Source: Scyliorhinus canicula
Lineage: Eukaryota
Assembly: GCF_902713615.1 (NCBI RefSeq)
Contig: NW_024056015.1
Location: 1 to 64,000, forward strand
DNA: 64,000 nucleotides
Direction: 5' to 3'
Shown: piece by piece, positions 3,665-55,963 of the stretch
Position numbering within the stretch: the first letter of the stretch is position 1
Layout: the number at the start of each line of letters is the position of its first letter
Made by a program: the position numbers and the translations under genes
Notes under the pieces: generated by a model
The model's input: only the letters and a program-made list of their open reading frames with translations
Told to the model about the DNA's origin: nothing
The model's database searches: none

Positions 3665-3703
3665 AGTTTTTGTACAGGGGTGAGGCTGCTTTGCATCACT
3701 GTG
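3665..3703 (-). other. 23-RSS of TCR V1 (CACAGTG-23-ACAAAAACT)
   Basis: On plus strand: AGTTTTTGT 3665-3673, 23-bp spacer, CACTGTG 3697-3703, abutting the V exon end. Confidence 0.95.
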
Positions 3704-4010
3704 AGGCTGAAAGCGCAGTAATACACGGCAGCATCACTCAGCTGCAGATCCCCGATAGTCAAACTGAGGAATTTCTTCGAGGTCTGGAGGTCAGTTGAGA
3801 AACGGACTTTAGCAAAGTCTGCTTTATCTTCATAACCCCCCGAGTGCTTCCTGAGTAAAAACTCGAGCTGTGAGTCTGGATGTTGGCGGTACCAAAATAA
3901 ATAATAGTTGCTTTGTATCGTATCATAGGTACAGTTCAAAATCACCGCTTTTCCTTCCGTCTGAACATCTGAGGACAGCGGCTGAGAGACAGAATCTCCA
4001 TGACTCTGAT
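3704..4010 (-). CDS. TRAV/TRDV: TCR alpha/delta variable segment V1, V exon (DQSHGDSVSQPLSSDVQTEGKAVILNCTYDTIQSNYYLFWYRQ...DAAVYYCAFS)
   Basis: Open frame with the V-set Cys, WYRQ and D-x-A-V-Y-Y-C motifs; acceptor tgttttgcag; followed by a 23-RSS. Sequence character is TCR Valpha/delta rather than VH. Confidence 0.92.
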
Positions 4011-4116
4011 CTGCAAAACATGTTCAAACGATTAAAGATCAGACGGACATGTGCTCAAAATTCAGATCCGACCCATGTTTTAGAAATGAAAAAAAATATG
4101 ATGTGTCCACAAATAC

Positions 4117-4162
4117 CTGTTAGAAATGCTCCCCACACAACCCAGATGCTGAGGAGCCGCAT
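4117..4162 (-). CDS. TRAV/TRDV: Leader exon of TCR V1 (MRLLSIWVVWGAFLT)
   Basis: 46-nt hydrophobic signal exon with a phase-1 G|GTATTT donor, in frame with the V exon across a 106-bp intron. Confidence 0.88.
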
Positions 4163-4233
4163 TGCCGCTGACCGCTCTGTAAAAGGGGAATCCGAGATCT
4201 GAAACCGTCCGTCCTCATCCCCACCCTCAATAA

Positions 4234-4267
4234 TCTGATGACGTATTTCAGAATGCTCAGACGTCAG
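4234..4267 (-). promoter_or_regulatory. CRE-like motifs of the V1 promoter (TGATGACGTA; CTGACGTCTG on minus)
   Basis: Two TGACGT cores 70-105 bp upstream of the ATG, with CCAAT-like gattgg further upstream; CRE-like elements are a known feature of TCR V promoters. Confidence 0.55.
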
Positions 4268-4325
4268 TTCCGTATTTCGCCAGTGGCACGGTGTGATTGG
4301 TTGATTAGAACTGGCTGTCACTGAA

Positions 4326-4428
4326 TGGGTTGTTGGGTTACGGGTATAGGGTGGATACGTGGGTTTGAGTAGGGTGATCATTGCTCGGCACAACATCGAG
4401 GGCCGAATGGCCTGTACTGTTCTATGTT
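4326..4428 (+). mobile_element. 3' half of HE1-like SINE
   Basis: Near-identical to 34570-34685. Confidence 0.8.
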
Positions 4429-4674
4429 CTAGATGCTGGAAGGATGATTCCCCTTTTGCGGGGAATCTATAAACAGGGGATGCAGCTTACAATATGGAGT
4501 CTCCCAATAATGCTGGAGATGGAAGGAATTCGTTTTCTCAGAGGGACATTAAACTTTGGGATTCTTTTTCCCAGAGAACACTGGAGGCCGGGTCATTGAA
4601 TAATTTTGGTGGAGGTCTTTGAATTATAATGGGTGTCAATGTGTCATAGGGATCAGGCGGAAATGTGGAGTAAA

Positions 4675-4849
4675 GGGGCTGGTTTAGCTCACCAGACTAA
4701 ATCGCTGGCTTTTAAAGCTGACCAAGCAGGCGAGCAGCACAGTTATATTCCTGTACCAGCCTCCCTGGACAGGCGCCGGAAGGTGGCGACTAGGGGCTTT
4801 TCACAGTAACTTCATTGAAGCCTACTCGTGACAATAAGCCATTTTCATT
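4675..4849 (+). mobile_element. Second tRNA-derived SINE family
   Basis: GGGGCTGGTTTAGCTCA head and gcttttcacagtaacttcattgaagcctact tail; a reverse copy lies at 21942-22124. Confidence 0.75.
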
Positions 4850-10618: not shown

Positions 10619-10649
<31 letters not shown>

Positions 10650-12938: not shown

Positions 12939-13214
12939 AGCTGTATTCTTATTAACGATAGCGGATGAAATAAACTGAACATTTCCATCTACATTCAATA
13001 TTTATTAATTCGAGGCGAGCTATTTCAGATCAATTACATATCAAACGATCACTCTGACCAATTATGAATCGCCTCTCAGATCAAGTAGCGATCAATCCGT
13101 CGCTCGATCAATCAAGGATCAAATTGTTTACATGGTCTCCTCATTCTCTCTAATCTGCACAATGTCAGGTTAATGTCTCCTTGGCCTGCAGCGAACGGAG
13201 TTGCGGTTGCAGAT

Positions 13215-13300
13215 TGACATCAGACCAATCAGACCCAGCGTCCTCAGCTCCGCCTATGGAATGTTGTGAAGAAAGTGACATCAGACCACCATCAGCCAAT
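13215..13300 (+). promoter_or_regulatory. V2 promoter: TGACATCA (13215-13222), AGTGACATCA decamer (13274-13283), CCAAT boxes
   Basis: CRE-like decamer matching the known TCR V promoter AGTGA(T/C)(G/A)TCA motif, 85-155 bp upstream of the ATG. Confidence 0.65.
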
Positions 13301-13368
13301 CGCCTGTTCTTGTTCGATATTCTGCTCTGTGGGATGCAAAAAGTCCCTGCATTTTCCGAGAAGCAGCG

Positions 13369-13414
13369 ATGCGGTTCCCCACTCTCGCTCTGGCCTGGGT
13401 GATAGTCTTTGCTG
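13369..13414 (+). CDS. TRAV/TRDV: Leader exon of TCR V2 (MRFPTLALAWVIVFA)
   Basis: 46-nt hydrophobic exon with G|GTAAGA donor, phase-compatible with the exon at 14095 (680-bp intron containing degenerate CR1 3' sequence). Confidence 0.85.
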
Positions 13415-14094
13415 GTAAGAAGTTTGAAACTTTACAAATGTTTAAATTCAGGAGGGATACATTGGAAAGTCAGGGAATTCATATTAAACTTGTACCTGAA
13501 TTCGGCCTTGGTTTGCATTAAGCGTTTCTTGGATGTATTTTACAAGATGAATATAGGGCACAGAATACCACACAGAATATAATTTCATAAATGCGGCATA
13601 TTGTCATATAACACTACAACTCGGATATTGTTCTCCAGTAAACGGCGTTGCGAAGGGTAACCTAATAGAGTTATAATGACGAGTTAGATGGGAAATACAA
13701 GAAGATGTTTGCCCTTATGGAGAATTCCAAAACTGTGAGTTTCAACAAACGTCATTAAAACATCTAATGGGGAATTCCGCAGAAACTCGTCACACAAAGA
13801 ACGACGTGAGTGTGGAATTCACTACCACATGGAGTAGTTGAGGAAATGGTATTGATGCATTGGAGCAATGTAGAGAAACAGAAGATGAATAAAATAATGG
13901 GTTAATTTACTGATAGAGTGAGATGGAGAGGGAGGGGGTGGTTAACACTGATATAGCCAGTGAGGTCGAATTACTATCTTACATTCCCACTTCTATTTAT
14001 TTTTCTGTAACTCTGATTGCAAATTTTGACCGTCGGCTCAGTTTAGTGTAACGTTTAATCGATGACTAACACTTTCTATAATCGTGTGTTGCAG

Positions 14095-14398
14095 GTCTGA
14101 GCGATGGAGACTCTGTTACTCAGCGGGAATCCTCACTCACACAGACAGAGGGAGAAGATGTCACTTTAACCTGCACGCATACCGATGATGCTTATTATTT
14201 ATTCTGGTACCGTCAATACCCAGATAGAGAGCCCGAGTTTGCGGTCCGGATATACAAGAGCGGAGGTGATCCAGTGAAAGGGGATTTCGCTCAGGAACGG
14301 TTTTCAGTTACCCTCCAACAATCAGAGAAGTTGTACCGATTGACCATCTCGGAGCTGCGGCTGTCTGACACCGCGGTCTATTACTGTGCACAGCGTCT
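14095..14398 (+). CDS. TRAV/TRDV: TCR alpha/delta variable segment V2, V exon (GLSDGDSVTQRESSLTQTEGEDVTLTCTHTDDAYYLFWYRQ...SDTAVYYCAQR)
   Basis: Open frame, acceptor gtgttgcag, conserved Cys/Trp/YYC, followed by a 23-RSS. Confidence 0.92.
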
Positions 14399-14437
14399 CA
14401 CAGTGATGGCAACGAGTGAGGTCCTTGTACAAAAACT
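14399..14437 (+). other. 23-RSS of TCR V2 (CACAGTG-23-ACAAAAACT)
   Basis: Heptamer 14399-14405, 23-bp spacer, nonamer 14429-14437. Confidence 0.95.
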
Positions 14438-17066
14438 GCCGCTGCTTTCTGGGTCACAGCTGCTGTCTGTTTGGGGCTGACACTTGAATCCTTTCCTGTG
14501 CGCGGAGACCGCGAGCACAATCCACAGAAACAATTTTAATATAGTTCACATCGAATATAGATTCCGCCCAATTAATGCAGTAACACTGGGAGGGCAGAAT
14601 TGGCTGGCGTTTATTTCGGTATATCAGTGAACTTGACACTGTCATTGAGAATGCAAAAACCAGCCGGTGGCCTGGGGAACTACTTAAATCGCCGAATCAC
14701 AATGAACCCGTGGAAAATACACACATCATTATTGGTTTACAATTTCATTATGTATCAGATGATGGACCCAGGTGAGAAAAACCCTAATAATTTTAATAGT
14801 CTGACTGAGCACTTCGCAATATTAATATCTCTTAAAGCTAAGAATCTAGAGCGTAAACAAGTTCTTTGAGTTTATTTTCAGGGCATGATTTGATCTTATG
14901 ATCAATGTATATTGATGCCTGCTGGGTTAAAAGCATTGGAACAAATGGTCAGGAACTGACTGAATACAGAAGCTTGATTGCGAAGTCAATCAGAAAGATT
15001 GCTGTAGTGAGTTACACACCCTGAAAATGACTGCACTAAATAATAGAGCGACTAAAACTTAACGGATACGACACACATCTCAGAATGTGAATAATGCGAG
15101 TTTCAGGCAGTGAAGAAATATCAAGGATACTTTCAAGGATGGAATTCACGACCGAGGGCCAGATGTGATGTTTCGTCATCCTTGCAAGTGCCAGAGAAAG
15201 ACTGGGATGTTCATTTCAGCTGAAGACATCTTTTAGATCGAAGTTGCTCCCACTGCCAACCTGTACGCGTTGATCAAACATTATGTATTAGGGCAATCTG
15301 AATGGCTTGCTGCGCTTTGTCATGCACTAAATGTAACTACTGAATTACCATAACCGCTTTCCCTTCAAAATGTATTGTAAATGAAACTCGAAAACAATAA
15401 TTCCCTGTACTGACTAAAATATTGGTGGAAGAACCTCTAACACCTCCCAGATCTCTAGCAGCAAATCCCAGGAACCACGATTCAGCGACTGCCTGGAAGT
15501 TCCAATCTTTGCCAGTATTCTGCAGGGCACACATGGAATCAGCCAATAACTGCCAAACTAATGTTCCTCGCAGTAACTACAATCATGCTGCCCTAGGCCT
15601 TGTGAAAGAATCTCTGTGATTTCAAATCTTCCAGCGCTCCAGGGACCTATTTGGATTGTTCAGCTTATTTTTCTTTGTCACATTCGAAAGCGCACAGATA
15701 AAATAAATACAGCTTTTGCTGATTTCAATAAATGTTAATACCCATTTTGTCAACAATGTTACAATCAAGTTTGAGTTGATATCCATTCAGATCACAAAAC
15801 CGATATTTTACGGAGGTACATTTCACATTTCAATCAGTCTCAGTTATTACCCCACTGATCTCTGTTTGTGTTACATTAGAGCCTGATTCATACTGTCTTA
15901 TACTCACAGAACACATGACCTGCACAGAGTTTCATAGGTGGACAATCATACCTGCTAGTGAGTGATCGCCGAATAAGTTACTGAACTTAATCATTTCCAT
16001 GCTTGTATCATAACAAATCCCATCTCTGCTTATATTGCACTGTACAATCCTCATGAATTACTGGACAACGCTCGGCCTGTGTTAATATTACTCTGGGCTC
16101 TGTATTTTCTCCCACTACACAAGACAGTGTCACTGTTTATTGTGCACGTTTCCTGCCTCCCGGTAAATTACGCTGGACCCTGTTTCATTTTAATGCATTG
16201 GGTAAATCATTTGGTTATATTACACTATCCACTGATTGAGTTGTCAATACAATATCTTATGCCTCTGTTTATAATGTTCAAGGAAATATTTTAGCTATTG
16301 CTCTACTGAACCTTGTATCCTATGCAGTGTATATCATGATAAACTCTACCCCAAACAATTGTGTAAAACACCACCTTTATCTTTGTATTAGACTCGGGTT
16401 TGCCTGAATTATTTTTGTACAGTTCTAATACTTTTCTCACTTATTCCTACATTATCAGGTGTCTTGGTTTCTATTCCACTGGGACTGCCGCAGTTTTTAC
16501 TGGCACTACGTCAGGCTCCTGTTTACCTTACAATCTGCATGCCTGCTGCATGACGCTGGGCCCTACCTCTGTTTCAGTTATTACTGCAGTAAACCTCTTC
16601 CTTGTTTATAATCCTCTGAGTTCATACTCCTCCCTACCGAGCCATTGCTTCATTCACTTGAGCATATCGCCTATGAATAGAATACAGAGGAAAGGAAGTT
16701 TTGTTAAATTCTGATTCGGACTGAAATGAAGGATTGTGGGCATCGCACGTGGGGGAGGATGTGAAGTCAGAAAGATGGATGCAGAAAATATTCCCGCAAA
16801 TGATTCCAGAGATGAGCAACTTGAGTTACCAAGAGAGATTGGAGACATTGCGACTGTTTCCCTTGACGAGCAGGTTGAGAAGCCATCTGGCAGATGTATT
16901 CGAAATCATGAGAGTTCGAGACAGAGTAGATATGGAGTGTTGCACGTTTTACTATGGGCGTAAAACGCGTTTATTGGGGTGTATTAACTTCCAAGTGCTT
17001 AACACCACTAGGCTCTGTCTTATGTATTTATTCAGCTTTAGGAGTCGCCAGTTGCCGTATAGACAA

Positions 17067-22768: not shown

Positions 22769-24308
22769 ATAAGAACATAAGAACTAGGAGCAGGAGTAGG
22801 CCATCTGGCCCCTCGAGCCTGCTCCGCCATTCAATGAGATCATGGCTGATCTTTTGTGGACTCAGCTCCACTTTCCGGCCCGATCACCATTACCCTTAAT
22901 CCCTTTATTCTTCAAAAAACTATCTATATTTACCTTAAAAACATGTAATGAAGGAGCCTCAACTGCTTCACTGGCAAGGAATTCCATAGATTCACAAGCC
23001 TTTGGGTGAAGAAGTTCCTCCTAAACTCAGTCCTAAATCTACTTCCCCTTATTTTGAGGCTATGTCCCCTAGTTCTGCTTTCACCCGCCAGTGGAAACAA
23101 CCTGCCCGCATCTATCCTATATATTCCCTCCATAATTTTAAATGTTTCTATAAGATCCCCCCTCATCCTTCTAAATTCCAACGAGTACAGTCCAAGTCTA
23201 CTCAACCTCTCCTCATAATCCAACCCCTTCAGCTCTGGGATTAACATAGTGAATCTCATCTGCACACCCTCCAGTGCCAGTATGTCCTTTCTCAAGTAAG
23301 GAGACCAAAACTGAACACAATACTCCAAGTGTGGCCTCACTATCACCTTATACAATTGCAACATAACCTCCCTAGTCTTTAACTCCATCCCTCTAGCAAT
23401 GAAGGACAAAATTACATTTGCCTTCTTAATCACCTGTTGCACCTGTAAACCAACTTTCTGTGACTCATGCACTAGCACACCCAGGTCTCTCTGCACAGCG
23501 ACATGCTTTAATATTTTATCGTTTAAATAATAATCCCGTTTGCTGTTATTCCTACCAAAACGGATAACCTCACATTTTTCAACATTGTATTCCATCTGCC
23601 AGACCCTTGCCCATTCACTTAACCTATCAAAATCCCTCTACAGACTTCCAGTATCCTCTGCACTTTTCGCTTTACCACTCATCTTAGTGTCATCTGCAAA
23701 CTTGGACACATTGCCCTTGGTCCCCAACTCCAAATCATCTATGTAAATTGTGAACAATTGTGGGCCCAACACGGATCCCTGAGGGACACCACTAGCTACT
23801 GATTGCCAACCAGAGAAACACACATTAATCCCCACTCTTTGCTTTCTATTAATTAACTATCTCTATCCATGCTACTACTTTACCCTTAATGCCATGCATC
23901 TTTATCTGATGCAGCAACCTTTTGTGTGGCACCTTGTCAAAGGCTTTCTGGAAATCCAGATATACCACATCCATTGGCTCCCCGTTATCTACTGCACTGG
24001 TAATGTCCTCAAAAAAATCCACTAAATTAGTTAGGCACGACCTGCCCTTTTTGAACCCATGCTGCGTCTGCCCAATGGGACAATTTCTATCCAGATGCCT
24101 CGCTATTTCTTCCTTGATGATAGATTCTAGCATCTTCCCTACTACCGAAGTTAAGGTCACTGGCCTATAATTTCCTGCTCTCTGCCTACCTCCTTTTCTA
24201 AACAGTGGTGTCACGTTTGCTAATTTCCAATCCACCGGGACCACCCCAGAGTCTAGTGAATATTGGTAAATCATCATTAGTGCATCTGCAATTTCTCTAG
24301 CCATTTCT
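22769..24308 (-). mobile_element. 5'-truncated CR1 LINE (RT domain and 3' end)
   Basis: ORFs 23849-24304, 23638-23835 and 22930-23595 with GVPQGSVLGP, FADDTK and RPHLEYCVQFWSP; same subfamily as 63590-64000. Confidence 0.95.
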
Positions 24309-32392: not shown

Positions 32393-34110
32393 TCCGGTAT
32401 CCGGTAAATTTCTCGAAATCAATTGCTCGAAAGCTAATTGCTCAAAGTCAGTTGATCGAAAAATTATTTCTCGAACTATCAATTGATCGAATGATAGATT
32501 GCTCGAAAAGCAGTACTTCAAAAAAGGTATACCCAAGATGAACAAGGTTCATTACATAAAAAAGCAACTAATAAAAAAACAATTAATTGGTTCAATAAAT
32601 AATACCAACAATTACAATTCATAATTTTATTAGTCTTTACAATTTATAAAAAGTTTAAAATACCAACAATTACAATTCATAATTTTATTAGTCTTTACAA
32701 TTTATAAAACGTTTAGAAGATTTTAGTAAGAAAAAAATAAAGTTAAAATTCAGGATTGCCATTATATGTTGGCTACTCCATTAGTATGCAATATTGTGTG
32801 CAACACTTCTTAAATATTCTTCTACATTTCCCGTTTCGTTATATTTTGATACAATATCCTGTAATCGTTGTGCGCAGTCACGGTATTTTTTTCTGCTCAC
32901 AGCTGTACTCACACCTCCCACAAATTGTTCGAATTGCAACTCGTGTAAACTTTGCTCTCGCTTTAAGCCATCTATAAACTTCCAAATCGACGGATGACAA
33001 GCATTTAGTTGATGTTGGAAACTGTTGTGCCATCCCTCAATAGAATTGTTCGTTTTCGGCAATCCTTCTTTGACGTAATCGAAACAGTTCCACATTTCAT
33101 GTTTAAATATAGGAGTACGTCTACGGTTGTGTCCATACGGCCGACCAATCCACGTATCTTCAAAGTAATCCACTACTCCTTGAAGTTCATCTGGAAAAAT
33201 CTCATTTTCAGTTAAAGATTCGAATGTTGCCACAACATTGGGTATCGGTATAAATGCCAATGCAGATAAGAGACGAGCTTTAAAAGCAAATTCGGCATTG
33301 GTGTGGTATATAAGCTTTAGGCCACTTCCTTGAATTTTTCTATAAAGGGTTTGACAAAAATGAAAAAAACACCCACGACATTTAGACATTGGAAATTCTT
33401 GTTCTATGGCCTTAACCATGGCCATTTCAAAATCAATCATTATTGTCAATGGCTGGAATATAGGGATTTTTTCTTTTAAAGCCATCAGGAACTTCCTATA
33501 CGTTTCTTCAGTCTTATTAGGTAGCAGTGCATATACAAGGAGTATAACATTACCTGATTTCACACCATGTATTGTATACAATTGAGCAAAAATCGAGGGC
33601 ACAGTTTTAAATGTTCCATCAGCATACCAGTGCTCCGAACGTACTAAGATATCGAGATTCTTTTGGGTTGCAAAAATTAATGTACGGCCATCTGTGGGAC
33701 CAGAGTCATAAATAAGGAATAAATCTCCTTTGCTGGTTTTTGTAAACTCTTCAGGGATATCAAGATCGAGGTAACTAGTAGGCAAAGCATATCCAACATT
33801 CTTTCTTGCGCGTGTATTGCGTATGGTTCTTTTCATATTTTCTACTGAAGGGAGCTTCACAGCTGCAGCACCACTTACCTCTATTGAGGCACATGATACA
33901 ATATATTGCGGTGTATCTCGACTATTCATCGCATGTTCTTTCACTTTCTCCATTGCTTTAGCAATTCCGTGGCGAATCTCACCAATTGTCGCAAGTCACA
34001 AAGTTAAATAATGACATTATTCAATTATCATCAACACAACATAAGAAGTTGCATTCACCAATTATGATCCGCATTTTCTTTTACAAAATGTAAATACAAT
34101 TCATTTAAGA
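32393..34110 (-). mobile_element. Mutator/MULE DNA transposon remnant (one end with subterminal repeats)
   Basis: Contains the transposase ORF; an array of TTG(C/A)TCGAA-like motifs at ~32405-32510; a ~58-bp tandem duplication at 32601-32715; degenerate N-terminal (FLYWCH-like) region at 33960-34110. Confidence 0.8.
32781..33953 (-). CDS. MULE (Mutator-like) DDE transposase, 390 aa, probably lacking its N-terminal DNA-binding domain
   Basis: WYADGTFK (D1), MIDFE (D2), GCFFH (CxxH) and TNNSIEGWH (E) motifs in one uninterrupted ORF. Confidence 0.88.
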   Translation of the reverse strand: MEKVKEHAMNSRDTPQYIVSCASIEVSGAAAVKLPSVENMKRTIRNTRARKNVGYALPTSYLDLDIPEEFTKTSKGDLFLIYDSGPTDGRTLIFATQKNLDILVRSEHWYADGTFKTVPSIFAQLYTIHGVKSGNVILLVYALLPNKTEETYRKFLMALKEKIPIFQPLTIMIDFEMAMVKAIEQEFPMSKCRGCFFHFCQTLYRKIQGSGLKLIYHTNAEFAFKARLLSALAFIPIPNVVATFESLTENEIFPDELQGVVDYFEDTWIGRPYGHNRRRTPIFKHEMWNCFDYVKEGLPKTNNSIEGWHNSFQHQLNACHPSIWKFIDGLKREQSLHELQFEQFVGGVSTAVSRKKYRDCAQRLQDIVSKYNETGNVEEYLRSVAHNIAY

Positions 34111-38055: not shown

Positions 38056-38064
38056 TATTTAAAT
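38056..38064 (+). promoter_or_regulatory. TATA-like element of the VH promoter (TATTTAAAT)
   Basis: About 80 bp upstream of the leader ATG; no ATGCAAAT octamer seen nearby. Confidence 0.45.
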
Positions 38065-38142: not shown

Positions 38143-38200
38143 ATGACCAGAAGGATGAGGTGGGCCATTTCTCTCAGTTTGTTGCTGACTTTCTTATCCC
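38143..38200 (+). CDS. IGHV: IgM VH leader exon (MTRRMRWAISLSLLLTFLS)
   Basis: Hydrophobic signal exon with C|GTGAGT donor, phase-compatible with the exon at 38327. Confidence 0.9.
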
Positions 38201-38326: not shown

Positions 38327-38628
38327 TTGTCCAGTCGGATGTTGTGTTGACTCAGCCAGAGGCAGAGACCGGGCGTCCCGGAGGCTCCCTGACACTGACC
38401 TGTAAAACCAGCGGCTTCGATCTCGGCAGCTACAGCACGCACTGGGTCCGCCAGGTTCCCGGACAGGGGCTGGAGTGGCTGGTTTGGTACTACAGTTCAT
38501 CAGACAACAGCTACGCCCCAGCCATTAAAGATCGATTCACTGCGTCCAAAGACATTTCAAACAACATCTTCTCTTTGGCCATGACGAACCTGAAGACCGA
38601 AGACACCGCAATCTATTACTGTGCAAGA
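38327..38628 (+). CDS. IGHV: Shark IgM VH exon ([42 protein letters not shown]...[10 protein letters not shown])
   Basis: Acceptor ttttacag, open frame, VH motifs [20 protein letters not shown] and YYCAR. Confidence 0.97.
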
Positions 38629-38637
38629 CACGTGGGT
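38629..38637 (+). other. IGHD: Probable germline V-D1 junction (CAC plus D1 remnant GTGGGT)
   Basis: No RSS directly after YYCAR; GTGGGT resembles the 3' end of shark IgM D1 as I recall it; only two ~390-bp inter-segment intervals are present instead of three. Confidence 0.65.
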
Positions 38638-38687
38638 CACAGTGCTGTGCACAGTGCTGTGCACAGCGACATCCTCATACAAAAACC
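38638..38687 (+). other. RSS with tandem heptamers: CACAGTG 38638, CACAGTG 38650, CACAGCG 38662; nonamer ACAAAAACC 38679-38687
   Basis: Spacers to the nonamer are 34, 22 and 10 bp; only the middle heptamer gives a usable (22-bp) RSS. Confidence 0.85.
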
Positions 38688-38999: not shown

Positions 39000-39063
39000 A
39001 GTATTTGACACGCTGTGTCTCACTGTGATAACTGGCACAGCAGTTACTGTCAATACAAAAAGC
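39000..39063 (+). other. IGHD: IgH D2 segment ATAACTGG (39028-39035) with 12-RSS on both sides
   Basis: AGTATTTGA-12-CACTGTG | ATAACTGG | CACAGCA-12-ACAAAAAGC. Confidence 0.9.
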
Positions 39064-39390: not shown

Positions 39391-39429
39391 GGTTATTGTA
39401 TGGTGCAGTCCAGGGAATGTGACACTGTG
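39391..39429 (+). other. 23-RSS of JH (GGTTATTGT-23-CACTGTG)
   Basis: Nonamer 39391-39399, heptamer 39423-39429. Confidence 0.92.
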
Positions 39430-39477
39430 ACTATCTGGGCTACTGGGGACAGGGGACCATGGTGACGGTGACTGCAG
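39430..39477 (+). CDS. IGHJ: IgM JH segment (YLGYWGQGTMVTVTA)
   Basis: WGQG motif, G|GTAAG donor in phase with Cmu1. Confidence 0.96.
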
Positions 39478-43574: not shown

Positions 43575-43956
43575 ATTAAAGCAGCTGCCCAGTGATCTAC
43601 ACTGCTGTCTGACTGTACACAGCCAGTGTTACTGAAAGTATTAAAGCAGCTGCCCAGTGATCTACACTGCTGTTTGACTGTACACAGCTAGTGTTACTGA
43701 CAGTATTAAAGCAGCTGCCCAGTGATCTACACTGCTGTTTGACTGTACACAGCCCGTGTTACTGACAGTATTAAAGCAGCTGCCCAGTGATCTACACTGC
43801 TGTCTGACTGTACACAGCCGGTGTTGCTGAAAGTATTAAAGCAGCTGCCCAGTGATCTACACTGCTGTCTGACTGTACACAGCCGGTGTTACTGACAGTA
43901 TTAAAGCAGCTGCCCAGTGATCTACACTGCTGTCTGACTGTACACAGCCGGTGTAT
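43575..43956. repeat. Minisatellite, 65-bp unit, ~6 copies
   Basis: ATTAAAGCAGCTGCCCAGTGATCTACACTGCTGTCTGACTGTACACAGCCGGTGTTACTGACAGT recurring at a 65-bp period. Confidence 0.95.
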
Positions 43957-44139
43957 CAAAGCTGATCAATGTGGAGAATCAGGACAGGATCGATGGTGAG
44001 GAAGAGGAGGAGGTGGGGGTGGTGGAGCCGAATGGAAGAGCCCTCAGCTCGGCTGTGGACAACAGGCAACAGAAAGCTGAGCCTGAGCTGAAAATCATCC
44101 AGATAAACATCGTCCTAATGGGCTGGGAACACCCGAGAA

Positions 44140-46765
44140 TGATCACTCACACATGTGCACTCACTCACCTATCTTCACTCATTCGCTTACCCTCACTCAC
44201 TCACCATACTCACAGTCACTGATTGACCCTCACTCCTCTATCCTCACACCCACCCTCACTCACCTACCCTCACACCCACCCTCACTCAGCTACCCTCTCA
44301 TCCACACTCACTCACCTATCCTCATTCACTCAGTCTCACTCACCTACCATTCCATTCATCCTCACTCACCCACCCTCTTTCACTCAACCTCACTCACCTA
44401 CCCTCACTCAACTATCCTCACACTCCCACCCTCATTTACCCACCCTCACTCCCCCCATCTACTGTCACACCCACCCCCACTCTTGAACACTCACTCAAGC
44501 ATACTCACACTTCCCACGCTCACTCACCTACCCTCCCTGACACACTCTCACTCACTCACCCTCCCTGACACACTCTCTCTCACCCACCCTCCCTGACACA
44601 CTCTCACTCATCCCACCCTCCCTGACACACTCTCACTCACCCACCCTCCCTGACACACTCTCACTCACCCACCCTCCCTGCCTCACTCTCACTCACCCAC
44701 CCTCCCTGGCACACTCTCACTCACCCACCCTCCCTGCCTCACTCTCACTCACCCACCCTCCCTGGCACACTCTCACTCACCCACCCACCCTGACACACTC
44801 TCACTCACCCACCCTGACACTCACTCACCCTCACTCACCCACCCTCCCTGACACACTCTCACTCAGCCACCCTCCCTGACACACTCACTCACCCACCCTC
44901 CCTGACACACTCTCACTCATCCACACTCCCTGACACACTCTCACCCACCCACCCTCCCTGACACACTCACTCACCCACCCTCACTCACCCACCCTCCCTG
45001 CCATACCATCACTCACCCATCCTCCCTGACACACTCTCACTCACCCACCCTCACTCACCTACCCTCACACCCACCTTCACTCACCCACCCTCACACCCAC
45101 CCTCACTCATCTACCCTCACGCCCACCCTCACTCAGCTACCCTCTCATCCACACTCACTCGCCTATCCTCATTCACTCAGTCTCACTCACCTACCATTCC
45201 ATTCATCCTCACTCACCCACCCTCATTCACTCAGCCTCACTCACCTACCATTCCATCCATCCTCACTCACCTACCCTCATTCACTCACGCTCACTCACCT
45301 ACCCTCACTCAACTATCCCCACACTCCCACCCTCATTTACCCACCCTCACTCACCCCCCCCGATCTACTGTCACACCCACCCCCACTCTTGAACACTCAC
45401 TCAAGCATACTCACGCTTCCCACGCTCACTCACCCACCCTCCCTGACACACTCTCTCACACACCCTCCCTGACACACTCTCTCTCACCCACCCTCCCTGA
45501 AACATTCTCACTCATCCACCCTCCCTGACACACTCTCTCTCACCCACCCTCCCTGACATGCACACACTCACCCACCCTCCCTGACACACTCTCACTCACC
45601 CACCCTCCCTGACTCACTCTCACTCACTCACCCTCACTCACCCACCCTCCCTGACACACTCTCACTCACCCACCCTCACTCACCCACCCTCACTCACTCA
45701 TCCTCACACTCCCACCCTCCCTGACACACTCTCTCTCACCCACCCTCCCTGACACTCTCTAACTCACCCACCCTCCCTGACACACTCTCACTCATCCACC
45801 CTCCCTGACACACTCTCACTCACCCACCCTCGGTGACACTCACCCACCCGCCCTGACACACTCACACACCCTCCCTGACACACTCTCACTCACCCACCCT
45901 CGGTGACACTCACCCACCCTCCCTGACACACTCACCCACCCTCCCTGTTACACTCTCACTCACCCACCCTCTGACACACCCTCACTCACCCACCCTGACA
46001 CACTCTCGCTCACCCACCCTCCGACACACTCTCACTCACCCACCCTGACACACAATCACTCACCCACCCTCCGACACACTCTCACTCACCCACCCTCACT
46101 CACCCACCCTACCTGACACACCATCACTCACCACCCTGACACACTCCCACCCTCCCTGACACACTCTCTCTCACCCACCCTCCCTGGCACTCTCTCACTC
46201 ACCCACCCTCCCTGACACACTCTCACTGACCCACCTTCCCTGACACACTCTCACTCACCCACCCTCCCTGACACACCCTTACTCACCCACCCTCACTCTC
46301 CCACCCACCCTCACTCTCCCACCCACCCTCACTCAATCTCACACACCCTGATTCAGTAACCCACACTCACTCACACATTCTCACTCATCCTCATTCAACT
46401 ACCATCACTCACCCTACCTCACCCACACTCACTCACCCTCTAACTCATCATCACTCTCCCGTCCTCCCTCACACGCCTACCCTGTTGCATTTCACCCTCA
46501 TTCACATAGCCTCACTCATTCACCCTCACTTACAAAGACTTGCACCCACCCTCTTTCATTCGCCTTCTCTCATACTTCCTCACTCACACACCGGACGCAC
46601 CTACTCTCCATCGCCCACTATCACTCACCCTCATTTACTCCCTCACCCACACTCACTCCCACTCACCCACACTCGCTCTCTCACTCTCATTCACGCACCC
46701 TAATTCACCCTCACTCACCCCCCCACCCCCCCCCCCCACCCCCTCACACACACACCCACTAATTC
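44140..46765. repeat. C-rich low-complexity array (CACTCACCCACCCTCCCTGACACACTCT-like, ~28 bp) with an internal duplication (~44270-44540 vs ~45120-45445)
   Basis: Direct inspection; the plus strand is almost devoid of G. Confidence 0.9.
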
Positions 46766-46773
46766 TCAATGAC

Positions 46774-47866
46774 GGGGGAAGGAACAGAGAGCCGGGGGAA
46801 GGGGCAGAGAGCCGGGGGAAGGGGCAGAGAGCCGGGGGAAAGGACAGAGAGCCGCGGGATGGAGCAGAGGGCCGGGGGAAGGAGCAGAGAGTCGGGGGTA
46901 GGTGCAGAGTGCCGGGGAAAGGAGCAGAGAGCCGGGGAAGGAGCAGAGAGCCAGGGGAAGGGCAGAGAGCCGGGGGAAGTGCAGAGAGCCGGGGAAGGAG
47001 CAGAGAGCCGGTGGAAGGGGCAGAGAGCCGGGGGAAGGGCAGAGAGCCGGGGGAAGTGCAGAGAGCCGGGGGAAGGGACAGAGAGCCGGGGAAGGGGCAG
47101 AGAGCCGGGGGAAGGAGCAGAGAGCCGGGAGAAGGGGCAGAGAGCCGGGGGAAGGAGCAGAGAGCCGCGGGAAGGTGCAGAGAGCCGGAGGAAGGTGCAG
47201 AGAGCCGGGGGAAGGAGCAGAGAGCCGGGGGAAGGAGCAGAGAGCCGGAGGAAAGTGCAGAGAGCCGGGGGAAGGGGCAGAGAGCCGGGGGAAGGTGCAG
47301 GCAGCCGGGGGAAAGAGCAGAGAGCGGGAGGAAGGTGCAGAGCGCTGGGGGAAGGAGCAGAGATCCGGGGAAGGGGCAGAGAGCCGGGGGATGGAGCAGA
47401 GAGCCGGGAGAAGGGGCAGAGAGCCGGGGGAAGGAGCAGAGAGCCGAGGGAAGGTGCAGAGAGCTGGAGGAAGGTGCAGAGAGCTGGGGGAAGGAGCAGA
47501 GAGCCGGGGAAGGAGCAGAGAGGCGGAGGAAAGTGCAGAGAGCAGGGGGAAGGAGCAGAGAGCCGGAGGAAAGTGCAGAGAGCAGGGGGAAGGAGCAGAG
47601 CGCCGGGGGAAGGAGCAGAGAGCCGGGGGAAGTGTAGGGACCCCGAAGAAGTGCAGAGGGGGTTTGCAGAGAGCTGGGGGGGGGGGGGAGTGCAGAGAGC
47701 CGGGAAAGGTGCAGCGAGCCGCAGGAAAGGTGCAGAGTGCAGGGGGAAGTGCAGAGAGCCGGAGGAAGTGCTGGGAGCCGGGGGAAGGTGCAGCGGGCCA
47801 CAGGAAAGGTGCAGAGAGCCTGGGGAAGTTGCAGAGAGCCGGTGGAAGTGCTGGGAGCCGGGTGAA
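46774..47866. repeat. G-rich minisatellite, ~20-bp unit GCAGAGAGCCGGGGGAAGGA, ~55 copies
   Basis: Direct tandem repeat; purine-rich on the plus (sense) strand. Confidence 0.95.
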
Positions 47867-48425
47867 GTGAGGACAGACGGAAGAAAGTCTATGGAGTGGG
47901 CGATAAGCGATAAGGATCGGGGTTAAGTGCACAGTGCTGGCGAAAGGCTCAAAGGGCCCGCAGAAAGTGCTAGGAACCGGGAAAAGCCCAAAGAACTGGG
48001 CAAAATACAGCGCTCAGCGCAGAGAGATGAGGGAACGCTCAGAGAGCGCGGGGCGGGGTGCGGGGGGATTGCAAACAACCCGGTCTCAGTGACAGGCGGA
48101 ATGTGGAGTTAACGCCACAATCAGCACAGCCAGGATCTTACTGAATGAGGGAGTAGGCTCGACGGGCCGAATGGCCGCCTCCCACTGTTAATGTGCATGA
48201 TCCGAAAATAGAGAATGTTGCTCTTACTTAAATATAGAGTTTTGTTGTAATTATATAAATGTGCATTCCGAAGGTATTTTTCAAGCAAAGTCACTATTCT
48301 GTGGTTTTGGGGGTGGGGGTAGTGAGCTGGAGAGAGGAGGGGGCATCAGTCAGTTTGAACAAAGGGAATTTCCCAAAACTGCAAAGATACAAATGAAGAG
48401 ACAACTTCTTTATCACAAAGTGCTG

Positions 48426-50927
48426 CTGATTGTGACGTACACAGCACAGTTCGCTGGCTTGTGACGTACACAGCTCAGTTAGCTGGATTGTGACGTGCAC
48501 AGCTCAGTTAGCTGGATTGTGACGTACATAGCTCAGTTAGCTGGTTTGTGACGTCCACAGTTCAGTTAGCAGGTTTGTGACGTACTCAGCTCAGTTAGCT
48601 GGATTGTGACGTACACAGCTCAGTTAGCTGGATTGTGACGTACACAGCTCAGTTAGCTGGATTGTGACGTACATAGCTCAGTTAGCTGGTTTTTGACGTA
48701 CACAGCTCAGTTAGCTGGTTTGTGACGTATACAGCTCACTTAGCTGGCTTGCGACGTACACAGCTCAGTTAGCAGGATTTTGACGTACGCAGCTCAGTTA
48801 GCTGGATTGTGACGTACACAGCTCAGTTAGCTGGATTGTGACGTACACAGTCAGTTAGCTGGTTTGTGATGTACACAGCTCAGTTAGCTCGCTTGTGACG
48901 TACACAGCTCAGTTAGCTGGATTATGACGTAAACAGCTCTGTTAGCTGGAATGTGACGTACACAGCACAGTTAGCTGCATTGTGACGTAAACAGCTCAGT
49001 TAGCTGGATTGTGACGTACACAGCTCAGTGAGCTGGATTGTGACGTACACAGCTCAGTTAGCTGGCTTGAGACGTACACAGCTCAGTTAGCTGGATTGTG
49101 GCGTACACAGCTCAGTTAGCTGGATTGAGACGTACACAGCTTAGTTAGCTGGATTGTGACGTACACAGCTCAGTTCGCTGGTTTGTGACGTACACAGCTC
49201 AGTTAGCTGGATTGTGACGTACACAGCTGAGTTCGCTGGATTGTGACGTACACAGCACAGTTAGCTGGATTGTGGCGTGCACAGCTCAGTTAATGGATTG
49301 TGACGTACACAGCTCAGTTAGCTGGATTGTGACGTACACAGCTCTGTAGCTGGATTGTGATGTACACAGCTCAGTTAGCTGGATTGTGACGTAAACAGCT
49401 CAGTTACTGGATTGTGACGTACACAGCTCAGTGAGCTGGATTGTGACGTACACAGCTCAGTTAGCTGGCTTGTGACGTACACAGCTCAGTTAACTGGATT
49501 GTGGCGTACACAGCTCAATTAGCTGCTTTGTGATGTACACAGCTCAGTTAGCTGGCTTGTGACGTACACAGCTCAGTTAGCTGGAATGTGGCGTACACAG
49601 CTCAGTTAGCTGGATTGTGACGTACACAGCTCACTTACCTGGATTGTGACGTACACAGCTCTCTTAGCTGGAATGTGACGTACAAAGCACAGTTAGCTGC
49701 ATTGTGACGTAAACAGCTCAGTTAGCTGGATTGTGACGTACACAGTTCAGTGAGCTGGATTGTGACGTACACAACTCAGTTAGCTGGCTTGTGGCGTACT
49801 CAGCTCAGTTAGCTGGATTGTGACGTACACAGCTCAGTTAGCTGGATTGTGACGTACACAGCTCAGTTAGCTGGATTTGACGTACACAGCTCTGTAGCTG
49901 GATTGTGATGTACACAGCTCAGTTAGCTGGATTGTGACGTAAACAGCTCAGTTAGCTGGCTTGTGACGTACACAGCTCAGTTAACTGGATTGTGGCGTAC
50001 ACAGCTCAGTTAGCTGGATTGTGCCGTACACAGTTCAGTTAGCTGGATTGTGACGTACACAGCTCAGTTAGCTGGATTGTGACGTACACAGCTCAGTTAT
50101 CTGGATTGTGACGCACACAGCTCAGTCAGCTGGATTGTGACGTACACATCTCAGTTAGCTGGCTTGTGATGTGCACAGCTCAGTTAGCTGGATTGTGGCT
50201 AAAACAGCTCAGTTAGCTGGATTGTGACGTATACAGCTCAGTTAGCTGGAATGTGGCGTACACAGCTCAGTTAGCTGGATTGTGACGTACACTGCTCTGT
50301 TAGCTGGACTGTGACGTACACAGCACAGTTAGCTGCATTGTGACGTAAACAGCTCAGTTTGCTGGATTGTGACGGACACAGTTCAGTGAGCTGGATTGTG
50401 ACGTAAACAGCTCAGTTAGCTGACTTGTGACGTACACAGCTCAGTTAGCTGGATTGTGGAGTCCACAGCTCAGTTAGCTGGATTGTGACGTACACAGCTC
50501 AGTTAGCTGGATTGTGACGTACACAGCTCAGTTCGCTGGTTTGTGAAATACACAGCTCAGTTAGGTGGATTGTGACGTACACAGCTGAGTTCGCTGGATT
50601 GTGACGTACACAGCTCAGTTAGCTGAATTGTGACGTACGCAGCTCAGTTAATGGATTGTGACGTCCACAGCTCAGTTAGCTGGATTGTGACGTACACAGC
50701 TCAGTCAGCTGGATTGTGACGAACACAGCTCAGTTAGCTAGATTGTGACGTACACAGCTCAGTAGCTGGATTGTGACATAGGCAGCTCAGTTAGCTGGAT
50801 TGTGACGTACACAGCTCAGTCAGCTGGTTTGTGATGTACACAGCTCAGTTAGCTAGATTGTGACGTATACAGCTCAGTTAGCTAGATTGTGAAGTATACA
50901 GCTCAGTCAGCTGGGCAGCTGGTTTGT
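48426..50927. repeat. AGCT-rich minisatellite, 29-bp unit CTGGATTGTGACGTACACAGCTCAGTTAG, ~86 copies
   Basis: Direct tandem repeat with two AGCT motifs per consensus unit; ends ~490 bp before Cmu1. Confidence 0.97.
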
Positions 50928-51412: not shown

Positions 51413-51712
51413 CGACACCGTCTCCGCCCACTCTCTACAGCCTGGTCTCCTCCTGCCAGCAACACAACACCGACGGCTCCGTAACCGTTGGCTGTTTGGC
51501 GATGGACTACTCCCCAGAAATCACCAGCCTTACTTGGAAGAAAGATGGGCAGCTGATCACCACTGGAGTTAAGAAATACCCGTCAGTGAGAAACAAGAAG
51601 GGAACCTACACCCTGAGCAGCCAGTTAACCATCACCGAGTCAGAGGGGGGATGCAGCAAAATCAGCTGTGAGGTTCGACACAGCGGCTCAGACAAGAGTA
51701 TTGAAATGCCAT
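51413..51712 (+). CDS. IGHM: IgM Cmu1 exon ([17 protein letters not shown]...[23 protein letters not shown]...[17 protein letters not shown])
   Basis: C1-set motifs, ctctcccag acceptor, T|GTAAGT donor, 300 nt in phase. Confidence 0.96.
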
Positions 51713-51916: not shown

Positions 51917-52228
51917 GTGGTGGAAATGACATCCATCCAAATGTTCTCCTCACCGTGAGTTCCAACGAAGAAATCTCAAGACAGAAATTTGCTACCATGG
52001 TCTGTTCAATCAACAATTTCCGTCCAAACTCAATTAACGTGAAGTGGCTGAAGAATGGACAAGCCATGGGTTCAGGAATTGTCACCTCCCCCGCCTGTGA
52101 ACTGAATGGGAACTTCTCGGCGAGCAGTCGGCTGACAGTCTCCGCTGGGGAATGGTTCAGCAAAGCGGTCTATACCTGCCAGGTCATTCATCAAGAGGTC
52201 ATCCAAAGTCACAACATCACCGCGTCTG
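51917..52228 (+). CDS. IGHM: IgM Cmu2 exon
   Basis: [23 protein letters not shown]...YTCQVIH; splice sites in phase, 312 nt. Confidence 0.96.
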
Positions 52229-52679: not shown

Positions 52680-53002
52680 CACAATAGTGGTTAGCATTGA
52701 GGCCTCACTGTGCCTGGGATCAGGTTCAATACTGACGCCGGGTGACTGTGGAATTTACACCTTCTCGCCGTCTCTGCACGGGTTTCCTCCAGGTGCTTCG
52801 GTTTCCTCCCGCAGGCAAATATGTGCAGGTTAGGTGAATTGGTCATCCTACATTGTCACTGAATGTCCAAAGATTAGGTGGGGTTGTGAGGTTACAGGGA
52901 TAGGGTGGGGGAATTGCCCAAGATAGAGTGCTCTTTCGAGGGTCGGTGCAGACTCCATGGGCCGAATGGTCCTCTTCTGCACTGTAGTGATCTATTATTC
53001 TA
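52680..53002 (+). mobile_element. Diverged HE1-like SINE in the Cmu2-Cmu3 intron
   Basis: Similar to the other SINE copies. Confidence 0.75.
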
Positions 53003-53175
53003 TAATAGTTTTCACAGAACACGCTGGTTTTCTATTGTATATCGAAGATTAAAGGCGGTCTGTCGGGGTTGATATTTTGAAGTTGCTTTATTCCCATTTA
53101 GAGAGTGAAGGCTGAATCATGCTATCCTGATTATGAAGCTGAAACTTGGGTTAATTTTCATGTTTTCAATCACAG

Positions 53176-53484
53176 ATCCTTCCCTTTGCACTGTTGCCTC
53201 AGTAACAATCCTGCCACCTCCAATAGAACAGGTCTTACTGGAGGCGACTGTAACCTTAACCTGCGTCATTTCGAATGCTCCTTATGGAGTCAACGTGTCC
53301 TGGAGTGAAGCGAAGAAGCCGCTGAAATCAGAGATTGCCGACCAGCCTGGGGCAGATACTGAGAGCGTGGTCGGCAAATTAAACATCTCGACACAAGCCT
53401 GGCTGAGTGGGGCTGAGTTTGAATGTGTGGCGAGCCATCAGGACCTGCCAACTCCTTTAAGAATTTCAATCCACAAAAAAATAG
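53176..53484 (+). CDS. IGHM: IgM Cmu3 exon
   Basis: [34 protein letters not shown]...[15 protein letters not shown]; cacag acceptor, G|GTGAG donor, 309 nt. Confidence 0.96.
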
Positions 53485-53699
53485 GTGAGCGGTGAGACTG
53501 AAGCAATAAGTGAGTCATTGTGTCTATTTCTAGTGCCAGTGCAGCGGTCAGTATTTAGCATTCAGTGTATTTATGGTCCATTCTGATTGGTAATTCCACT
53601 AACTAAATACTCTGGGCTCTTAGAGTTTAAGGGGGAAATTGACATGCAGACGAATGAACAATGGATTAAAAGCAGTGATATTGGGATTAGATGGAACGA

Positions 53700-55250
53700 G
53701 ACTGCAGACCATAAGACTTAGGAGCAGATGTAGGCCACTGGGCCCATCAACACCGGTCCAGCCTGCAGTGACGTCCTGACTGATCTGATGTGATAATCTT
53801 CAACTCCTCTTTCCCGCCTTATCCCCATATCTCTTGCCGTCTTTACTGATTTAAAATGCGCCTCTCTCAACCTTGAACATACTGAACAACCCAGAATCTA
53901 CAGCCCCCTGCGTTACATAATTCCACAGCTTCACGACCCTCTGAGAGAGGAAATTCCTTCTCATCTCTGTCTTAAATGGGTGAACCCTCACTTTGTGATC
54001 CTGCACTGCTCCGAGACGCTCCTACAAGGGAAAACAACCTCTCAGCGTCTATCCTAAGAAGCTCCCGGAGAATCTTTCATGTCTCAATTAGGTCGCCTTC
54101 ATTCTTCTAAACTCCAATAAGTACAACCCAGCACGGTAGCATTGTGGATAGCACAAGCGCTTCACAGCTCCAGGGTCCCAGGTTCGATTCTGGCTTGGGT
54201 CACTGTCTGTGCCGAGTCTGCACATCCTCCCCGTGTGTGCGTGGGTTTCCTCCGGGTGCTCCGGTTTCCTCCCACAGTCGGTAAGATGTGCAGCTTAGGT
54301 GGATTGGCCATGATAAATTGCCCTTAGTGTCCAAATTGCCCTTAGTGTTGGGTGGGGTTACTGGGTTATGGGGATAGGGTGGTGGTGTTAACCTTGGGTA
54401 GGGTGCTCTTTCCAAGAGCCGGTGCAGACTCGATGGGCCGAGTGGCCTCCTTCTGCACTGTAAATTCTATGTCTACTTAACCTCTCCTCTGAAGAAAATC
54501 CCTCCATACTCGGGGTCAACCTCGTGATCCTTCTCTGGACTGCCTTCAAAACCAACCTGTCTTCCTCAGATAAGGGCAACAAAACTATTCAAAGTGTATC
54601 AAGTGTAGTCTAACTAATGCCTTGTATAATTTGAGCTCGACTTCCCCATGTTTATATTCTATTCCCATTGAAATAAATGCCAACATTCAATTTGTCTCCA
54701 TCTTACCTGCAGAACTTGCTTTATGTGGTTTCTGCACGAGAACCCCCAATTCCCCCGTTACTTCAGCTTTCCCCAGTCTTTGTCCATCTAAATAATATTT
54801 CGTTATGTTCCTCCTCCGACCAAAGTGTCTCAGCTCACATTTTCCTGCATCATATTCCATCTGCCAACATTTTACTCAGTAACGTAAGCTGGCTCTGTTC
54901 CTCTGTAGACTTTATGTCCTCACCACTTGCCTTTCTACCTATTTTTGTATCTGCAGCCGTGGGAATAGCACATTCACTTATTAAACACAGTTTTGAAATT
55001 CATGTATATTACAACTATTGGTTTCCCTCTCTCTAGCCTTCTCGTTATCACCTCAAAAAATTGCAATAAATTTGTGAAGCATGATTTACCTTCGCAAAGC
55101 CGTGCTGACTCTGCTTAATTATATCCTGTATGTCTAAATGCCCAGCTGTTAAGGTCATTGGCCTATAGTTACCTGTTTTTGTCTCCCTCCCTTTTTAATA
55201 AGGGTGTTACATTGGCAGTTTCCAATCCTCTGGGCGTGAGGTAGGGGGAG
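53700..55250 (-). mobile_element. Degenerate CR1 fragment in the Cmu3-Cmu4 intron, interrupted by a SINE
   Basis: Reversed CR1 3' tail near 53710 and RT-like remnants (ORFs 54388-54582, 55169-55444). Confidence 0.6.
54129..54474 (+). mobile_element. HE1-like SINE nested in CR1
   Basis: Full SINE head, body and tail. Confidence 0.88.
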
Positions 55251-55529
55251 TTTAGTGTGAAGCTTATACACCAGCACAGAACAGTTGGGCCGAATGGCCT
55301 GTTTCCCTGCTGTACACTTTCTGAAACTTTCGAATCCAATATTCGTAAGTTCTCAGGGAAAAGGATTGTGTCCACCTCTGCTCCGAGCTGGGAACCCGGA
55401 CAGATCCCAAAGTGGAAAATGGAAACCTTTAAAATCCAACACAAAACACATTTCTCTCACATCTAACCCGCGGTTCCATTGTCTCCGGAATTCCCCATTT
55501 TATTGACATTTATTGTACATTTTCTGCAG

Positions 55530-55921
55530 ATCCCAATCCGTGGGAACCGTCCGTCTCTGTCCTCCTGCCCTCGGCTGAAGACGTCTCCGCTCAGAGATTC
55601 GTCTCCCTCAGCTGCTTAGTGAGAGGTTTCTCCCCCCGAGAGATCTTCGTCAAGTGGACCGTCAATGACAAGCCGGTGAATCCCGGGAACTACAAGAACA
55701 CCGAGGTGATGGCGGAGAACGGCAATAGCTCCTTCTTCATGTACAGCCTGTTATCCTTTGCAGCGGAGGAGTGGGCCAGCGGCGCTTCTTACTCCTGTGT
55801 GGTGGGACATGAAGCCATCCCCTTGAAGATCATCAACAGAACGGTTGATAAATCCAGCGGTAAACCCAGTTTTGTGAACATTTCCCTCGCTCTGATGGAC
55901 ACCGTTAATTCATGTCAATGA
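55530..55921 (+). CDS. IGHM: IgM Cmu4 exon plus secretory tailpiece (..[23 protein letters not shown])
   Basis: ttctgcag acceptor; [18 protein letters not shown]...YSCVVGHE; tail with N-glycan sequon and penultimate Cys; internal TM donor G|GTAAAC at 55860. Confidence 0.97.
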
Positions 55922-55948
55922 GAATCTATCAATTGCATTTCGAACTAA

Positions 55949-55963
55949 AATAAAAATAATAAA
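55949..55963 (+). terminator. Secretory IgM polyadenylation signals (AATAAA x2)
   Basis: AATAAA at 55949-55954 and 55958-55963, ~30 bp after the stop codon. Confidence 0.8.

Follow-up and report, generated by a model that had tools for sequence, protein, structure and literature searches.

The question raised by this locus is whether antibody genes and TCR genes are true neighbors here, and whether the TCR-type genes among them are in use. The window, meaning the whole 64-kb stretch of scaffold that was analysed, carries two intact V genes of TCR alpha/delta type (V1 and V2) and one open IgM minicluster. The window probably belongs to the antigen-receptor complex of elasmobranchs, in which a single chromosome carries IgH miniclusters interspersed with V segments of TCR alpha/delta type. 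A strict RSS scan of the 64 kb returned exactly three V-type RSSs, each abutting a V-set reading frame, and the string CACAGTG-N23-ACAAAAAC occurs twice in the window and never in 100 shuffles. V2 and the IgM cluster both lie on the plus strand; V1 is a minus-strand gene, oriented head-to-head to V2. From the V2 RSS to the VH ATG the distance is 23.7 kb with the estimated length of an assembly gap counted in, in agreement with the ~24 kb given in the initial annotation. A tblastn search of the window using its own domains as queries found no further V or C exons. There is also no TCR D, J, or C within the window, which leaves the earlier description of the IgM cluster as standing “at the edge of the TCR V array” without support. 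An Rfam search of the window gave no match. ARAGORN made a single tRNA-like call in the window, at 36.7 kb, and nothing at the gap flank.

On the antibody side of the window, the ATG of VH is preceded, ~80 nt upstream, by a TATTTAAA box (38056–38063, plus strand); the Ig octamer ATGCAAAT is absent near VH. VH has a split leader, and all of the features that follow are on the plus strand. The leader exon (38143–38200) reads MTRRMRWAISLSLLLTFLS plus 1 nt, and the VH exon (38327–38649) is of IgM type, has the CDR2 YYSSSDNSY and the motif YYCAR, and matches Pfam V-set at E 1.3e-18. Its 3' end carries 21 extra coding nt, among them a heptamer-like duplication of 12 nt, and is followed by an RSS (38650–38687) made up of CACAGTG, a spacer of 22, and the nonamer ACAAAAACC. 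Between VH and JH there is one D segment, ATAACTGG (39028–39035), of the 12/12 type, with a 12-RSS on each side (39000–39063 with the flanking signals). JH follows, with a 23-RSS (39391–39429), a coding segment (39430–39477, YLGYWGQGTMVTVTA) containing the WGxG motif, and a splice donor GT at 39478. The V-D-J region is compact, spanning 1.3 kb. The extra coding letters of VH fit a germline V-D1 join, and are possibly such a join or else a 12-nt duplication.

JH is separated from Cmu1 by an intron of 11.9 kb, of which ~7 kb consists of tandem arrays (43575–50914, plus strand) with units of 65 nt x 6, 28 nt x 80, 20 nt x 55, and 29 nt x 86. Four constant exons follow on the plus strand, each matching Pfam C1-set: Cmu1 (51413–51712, E 9e-16, with splice sites read), Cmu2 (51917–52228, E 5e-19), Cmu3 (53176–53484, E 1.2e-08), and Cmu4 with the secretory tailpiece (55530–55921, E 2e-22). 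Residues 5–128 of Cmu4 and its tail match human mu chains in an end-to-end alignment at E ~1e-46, and the mu tailpiece has its N-glycosylation site and penultimate Cys. Downstream, the secreted form is provided with two AATAAA signals for polyadenylation (55949–55963, plus strand). With all exons open and all introns in phase 1, the open VH-D-JH-Cmu1-4 cluster with a secretory tail is present as first described. That it is “complete” holds only for the secreted form: Cmu4 has an internal GT at 55860, at the position of the membrane-form donor, and no TM exon was found on the plus strand in 55.4–64 kb, that is, within 8 kb downstream of Cmu4.

On the other side of the window, V1 and V2 both have the features of a TCR alpha/delta V gene, namely a split leader, a phase-1 intron, and a V-set exon with the conserved Cys-Trp-Cys, and in both a 23-spacer RSS stands directly after the coding end. 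The V1 leader exon (4117–4162, minus strand), as read from the sequence, gives MRLLSIWVVWGAFLT plus 1 nt with a donor GT at 4116. It joins the V exon (3704–4010, minus strand; TCR alpha/delta type, YLFWYRQ ... AVYYCAFS; Pfam V-set E 1.4e-14) across a phase-1 intron with the frame kept open. The V1 RSS (3665–3703, minus strand) consists of CACAGTG, a spacer of 23, and the nonamer ACAAAAACT. A large protein search with V1 returned no matches. The V2 leader exon (13369–13414, plus strand; MRFPTLALAWVIVFA plus 1 nt) is followed, after an intron of 680 nt, by the V exon (14095–14398, plus strand; TCR alpha/delta type, YLFWYRQ ... AVYYCAQR; Pfam V-set E 8.5e-17) and an RSS (14399–14437, plus strand) of the same composition, CACAGTG, a spacer of 23, and ACAAAAACT. 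Both genes had been described as open, with leaders and perfect 23-RSSs; the open frames, the leaders, and the spacers of 23 are borne out, but the nonamers have one mismatch to the consensus. Upstream of V2, ~90 nt from its ATG, lies a AGTGACATCA decamer (13274–13283, plus strand) with a CCAAT box after it. The decamer has one match in the window, compared to 0.87 expected by chance, and its surroundings align with the region upstream of V1, where there is a similar motif, AGTGACA..CCAATCA. From its position, the decamer is a putative promoter element resembling those of TCR genes.

Evidence of use comes from RNA contigs for V2. The leader-to-V splice (joint 13413 to 14094, GT..AG) is present in RNA contigs from two runs (X11 and X12). 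These contigs span the V2 exons only, and they end or depart from the germline exactly at 14398, the last coding base, beyond which one contig continues in frame into J-like sequence that is absent from the window. This junction sequence covers at least 10 J-like residues and does not reach an FG motif. It is the only V(D)J-type junction observed, joining V2 to non-local J-like sequence in a contig that ends before any C exon; no chimera between VH and a TCR chain was seen. Over 305 positions, the junction-bearing contig (X12) and the window disagree at 9; seven of these differences were listed, and four of those fall at third positions and are synonymous. The contig may therefore derive from an allelic copy or a closely related paralogue. 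Somatic hypermutation was considered for the same nine differences and was rejected as a first choice, given the four synonymous third-position changes among the seven listed. Leader-to-V splicing and the in-frame joining of V to J-like sequence from elsewhere thus mark V2, or a copy with at least 97% identity to it, as a V gene in use rather than an orphaned relic.

These observations suggest how the locus could work. V1 and V2 would be V segments of the conventional TCR alpha/delta type, and each would have a promoter of its own besides its split leader and 23-RSS. In T-lineage cells, RAG would join such a segment to a 12-RSS J (or D) outside the window, and splicing would then link leader, V(D)J, and C in the transcript. 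Both the splicing and the V(D)J junction were seen for V2 or its at least 97% identical copy, and the C exon would be supplied from elsewhere. The IgM minicluster, judging from its anatomy, would work on its own in B cells, the 22-spacer signal of VH joining the 12/12 D and the D joining the 23-RSS of JH. The JH donor would then be spliced over the 11.9-kb intron to Cmu1-4, giving secreted IgM through the tailpiece and AATAAA and membrane IgM through the internal Cmu4 donor and TM exons beyond the window. The proximity of Ig and TCR segments could in addition serve as the known substrate for “trans”-rearrangements of VH to TCRdelta. A more far-reaching reading, which we hold tentatively and with more doubt than confidence, is that IgM miniclusters are nested inside a working TCR alpha/delta V array, that V2-like V genes are routinely used, and that the amplified unit consists of TCR V genes plus an IgM cluster. 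If such nesting is true, a T cell using a V2-like V would delete or invert whole IgM clusters on the way to a distant J.

The linkage of the Ig and TCR-type genes depends on the two halves of the window belonging together. The assembly gap between them (31054–31838) is a counted run of 785 N, not the 795 N of the initial annotation, and lies inside dispersed-repeat DNA. Its left flank ends in tRNA-like sequence with the look of a SINE head, and its right flank begins in a dispersed repeat with further copies elsewhere in the window; self-BLAST of both flanks found no element bridging the gap. No exon or reading frame of V1, V2, or the IgM cluster crosses the gap, so the frame across it is irrelevant. 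The left half with V1 and V2 could have been wrongly joined at the N run to a right half with the IgM cluster that is no genomic neighbor, and the position of the gap in dispersed repeats, with different elements on its flanks and nothing in the sequence that bridges them, speaks for such a scaffold misjoin. We regard it as unlikely, as the gap length is odd and not a round placeholder, which suggests a measured size, and as the same Ig/TCR-V neighborhood is published for four species (PMC12227049). The placement of the IgM cluster and the TCR-type V genes on one scaffold stretch is supported, with their linkage resting on the scaffolded 785-N gap.

The class of V1 and V2 also had to be considered. 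The two are 57% identical to each other and each is ~30% identical to VH. They could, on another reading, not be TCR V genes but Ig-type or “intermediate” segments (light-chain-like, or TAILV, the TCRdelta-associated Ig-like V segments) that serve Ig clusters or nothing, which we consider quite improbable. In a PDB search with V1, TCR alpha and delta chains ranked best among single-V chains, which speaks for TCR, and one Ig heavy chain VH scored about level with the TCR alpha chains, which speaks for the other reading. The top 60 PDB matches of V2 were all multi-domain scFv chains and have no bearing on class. An AlphaFold model of V2 (pLDDT 76), compared by Foldseek to the Swiss-Prot models, matched all V classes at similar E-values, and the near-equal scores of VpreB, Ig lambda, VH, TRAV, and TRGV would again suit an Ig-type or intermediate V. 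V domains intermediate between TCR and Ig are, moreover, mentioned by Flajnik et al. (PMC12227049). Against this, framework 2 has the motif YLFWYRQ and not the WVRQ-GLEW interface of a VH, and the J-like sequence that V2 joins in the transcript is long (10 residues or more without an FG so far), non-local, and unlike the JH of the window. In addition, tblastn of the window found no J or C exon after V1 or V2, so they are not IgL-type miniclusters, and no J-C lies within reach downstream. Taken from motifs, one PDB ranking, and the J-like junction, the assignment of V1 and V2 as TCR alpha/delta-type V genes is probable. It is very improbable that V2 instead feeds the IgM cluster, its 23-RSS joining the 12/12 D 24 kb downstream to give TCR-V/Cmu chimeric chains, for although the shared orientation, the geometry, and the 12/23 rule permit such joining and the first contig letters after V2, ATACTGG, are similar to the D ATAACTGG, a seven-letter likeness is at chance level and the rest of the junction matches neither the JH nor anything else in the window.

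The preferred reading, a piece of the elasmobranch antigen-receptor complex with TCR alpha/delta-type V segments joined to segments outside the window, places this DNA within an arrangement that is already in print. Flajnik et al. (Sci Adv 2025, PMC12227049) describe an antigen-receptor complex (AgRC) of elasmobranchs, in which IgM, IgW, and IgNAR miniclusters are in linkage with TCR alpha/delta, with a synteny that includes PSMB5, UrIg2, IgW, and IgNAR. The same paper reports, for catshark, white shark, epaulette shark, and stingray, that some V exons of TCR alpha/delta type are situated between IgH clusters (PMC12227049). The mixing of Ig and TCR V genes is therefore a known arrangement, published in 2025 and reported in four elasmobranchs, and the window is a good example of it and no discovery (PMC12227049). 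The accompanying proposals, that proximity feeds VH-TCRdelta chimeras and preserves an old Ig/TCR linkage, coincide with the published view, and the wider case, that nesting of antibody and TCR genes explains the chimeric Ig-TCR receptors of sharks and bears on the origin of both receptor families from one locus, has likewise been made in that paper (PMC12227049). Splicing and V(D)J joining of a V2-like gene in RNA were not found reported in the sections of PMC12227049 consulted. The window contributes a cleanly annotated example of the known arrangement and lends modest support to the use, in rearranged transcripts, of a TCR-type V that neighbors an IgM cluster.

Compared to the AgRC, the window has the same combination of an IgM minicluster and TCR alpha/delta-type V exons on the same DNA, here with the 785-N gap between them, and there is no difference in kind; what the RNA adds for the window is the splicing and V(D)J joining of one such V. 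The classical shark IgM minicluster, of the horned-shark type, has the order VH-D1-D2-JH-Cmu1-4-TM, in which D1 carries 12/22-23 signals and D2 carries 12/12 signals. The cluster in the window resembles it in its compact V-D-J, its 12/12 D, and its 23-RSS JH. Its four C1-set exons are also shared, and so is the mu tailpiece, where an N-glycosylation site is present and the penultimate residue is Cys. The cluster differs in having a single free D instead of two, 21 extra coding nt in VH before the 22-spacer RSS, a JH-Cmu intron of 11.9 kb with ~7 kb of tandem arrays, and no TM exons within 8 kb of Cmu4. For nurse shark, two papers cite the presence of VH/TAILV segments within the TCR delta locus and the trans-rearrangement of IgM/IgW VH to TCRdelta (PMC12227049, PMC5931798). 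The window is like that locus in that Ig-type and TCR-type rearranging segments lie within mutual reach, and, in place of the lone VH of nurse shark, the Ig genes here form an entire minicluster that has C exons of its own.

A strict scan of both strands over the 64 kb, allowing at most one mismatch in the heptamer CACAGTG, a spacer within 1 nt of 12 or 23, and at most two mismatches in the nonamer ACAAAAACC, found exactly three V-type recombination signals (RSSs), each adjoined by a V-set reading frame that is open. Two exact matches to CACAGTG-N23-ACAAAAAC are present in the window, compared to no occurrence in 100 shuffles. The presence of T cell receptor (TCR)-type V genes and an open IgM cluster in one window, as claimed in the initial annotation, was confirmed, with corrections.

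Two of the V genes lie to the left of the N gap. As read from the sequence, V1 is on the minus strand, with a leader (4162-4117), an intron, a V exon (4010-3704) and an RSS (3703-3665), and V2 is on the plus strand, with a leader (13369-13414), a 680-nt intron, a V exon (14095-14398) and an RSS (14399-14437). As the two genes are oriented head-to-head, deletion cannot bring both of them to one J array. A 25-nt minisatellite (62 copies, 85% matches, 1749-3299) starts approximately 370 nt past the V1 RSS and gives long spurious open reading frames in three frames.

Both V1 and V2 are called as Pfam V-set domains and contain the FR2 motif YLFWYRQ; their mutual identity is 57%, and either is approximately 30% identical to VH, the V exon of the IgM cluster. 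An AGTGACA...CCAATC motif resides upstream of both genes, a motif match that by itself is at chance level. Among single-V chains in the PDB, V1 matched TCR alpha and delta chains on top, with one Ig heavy chain scoring similarly, and a large protein search returned no matches for V1. The PDB list for V2 was dominated by scFv chains, and its predicted model (pLDDT 76) matched Swiss-Prot models of VpreB, Ig lambda, VH, TRAV and TRGV with nearly equal E-values. On the basis of their FR2 motif and 23-RSS, the absence of a nearby J-C and a junction detected in RNA, V1 and V2 likely belong to the TCR alpha/delta class.

Four sequencing runs from a single 2021 study of this organism contained 41-85% of the V2 exon's words. 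For the 1.15-kb V2 gene region the best run (X9) contained no more than 21% of the words, which equals the exon's share of that region. Contigs of the four runs were aligned to positions 13000-14700, and as they cover the V2 leader and V exon and leave the intron and 3' flank uncovered, the runs represent RNA. Positions 13413 to 14094 (GT..AG) are skipped in contigs from two runs, confirming the V2 leader and intron as annotated. One 369-nt contig extends from the leader through the entire V exon, up to and including 14398 immediately ahead of the heptamer, and continues with letters absent from the window, reading in frame ...YYCAQRL DTGTGSAKP(V). This junction looks like V(D)J joining to a J, and the sequence presumably resembles long TCR alpha J segments, which we treat as a lead only. 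A 293-nt contig from a different run shows a single difference relative to the window and ends exactly at 14398. The junction-bearing contig differs from the window at 9 of 305 positions and, because four of the seven listed differences are synonymous, may derive from an allele or close paralogue rather than from hypermutation. RNA contigs also match two short non-exon stretches near V2 (13000-13116 and 13811-13843), the latter flanked by unrelated letters in two runs and therefore probably part of an expressed repeat.

To the right of the gap, the IgM cluster lies on the plus strand and has introns that are all phase 1. A TATTTAAA box (38056) is followed by the VH leader (38143-38200), the VH exon (38327-38649; RSS with a 22-nt spacer and a heptamer and nonamer that are both perfect), one D only (ATAACTGG, 39028-39035) with a 12-RSS on either side, and a JH (39430-39477) that has a 23-RSS and contains WGQGT. 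VH carries 21 coding letters past CAR, including a 12-nt heptamer-like duplication; within 38632-38687, its coding end reads CACAGTGCTGTG twice and then CACAGCG, and of the heptamers here only the second has legal 22-nt spacing to the nonamer. Given that just one D is free, this VH end may reflect a germline V-D1 join, which the 21 extra coding letters would fit, or else a duplication of 12 nt within the signal.

The 11.9-kb JH-Cmu intron contains four long tandem arrays (43575-50914): a 65-nt unit in 6 copies, a C-rich 28-nt unit in 80, a purine-rich 20-nt unit in 55, and a 29-nt unit in 86. The last (48428-50914, 88% matches) has two AGCT motifs per unit and ends approximately 500 nt ahead of Cmu1. 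Cmu1 (51413-51712), Cmu2 (51917-52228), Cmu3 (53176-53484) and Cmu4 with the mu tailpiece (55530-55921) are free of stops; Cmu4 residues 5-128 align to mu chains of human at an E-value of about 1e-46, and two AATAAA signals lie downstream. Searches by tblastn with the window's own domains yielded no further V or C exons in the window, and no transmembrane (TM) exon was found between 55.4 and 64 kb. The cluster, initially described as complete, is therefore complete for the secreted form only.

A single N run is present in the window (31054-31838), counted at 785 letters instead of the 795 first reported. No exon or frame of V1, V2 or the IgM cluster spans it, so the frame across the gap is irrelevant. 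The left flank ends in tRNA-like sequence resembling a SINE head, and the right flank starts in a dispersed repeat with more copies elsewhere in the window; as these are different elements, no part of the sequence links the two sides. Continuity of the V1/V2 side with the IgM side is a possibility favoured by the gap's non-round length, which suggests that it was sized, and by the published occurrence of the same Ig/TCR-V neighbourhood.

Between the N run and the IgM cluster there is an intact 390-aa open reading frame (32781-33953, minus) that encodes a MULE transposase domain (Pfam E 7.5e-18) and adjoins a 58-nt x 2 repeat (32601-32715). Three LINE copies (22930-24304, minus; 26553-29065 and 61077-63265, plus) carry reverse-transcriptase frames (Pfam RVT_1). 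The copy at 61077-63265, in which ORF1 is open and encodes a GDSL-esterase domain and is followed by an open endonuclease/RT start, sits downstream of Cmu4 and ahead of where the TM exons are expected.

The initial annotation viewed the Ig/TCR linkage as a substrate for chimeras. This interpretation has partial support but is not new, as it matches the published view: Flajnik et al. (2025, PMC12227049) describe TCR alpha/delta-type V exons located among IgH clusters in four elasmobranchs, a catshark included, and account for VH-to-TCRdelta transrearrangements by Ig/TCR proximity; nurse shark VH-TCR chimeras are likewise cited in PMC5931798. An IgM cluster beside TCR-type V genes is an arrangement already known, to which V2, through a contig that may come from an allele or close paralogue, makes a small addition: RNA evidence for splicing and rearrangement of a TCR-type V gene 24 kb from an IgM cluster.
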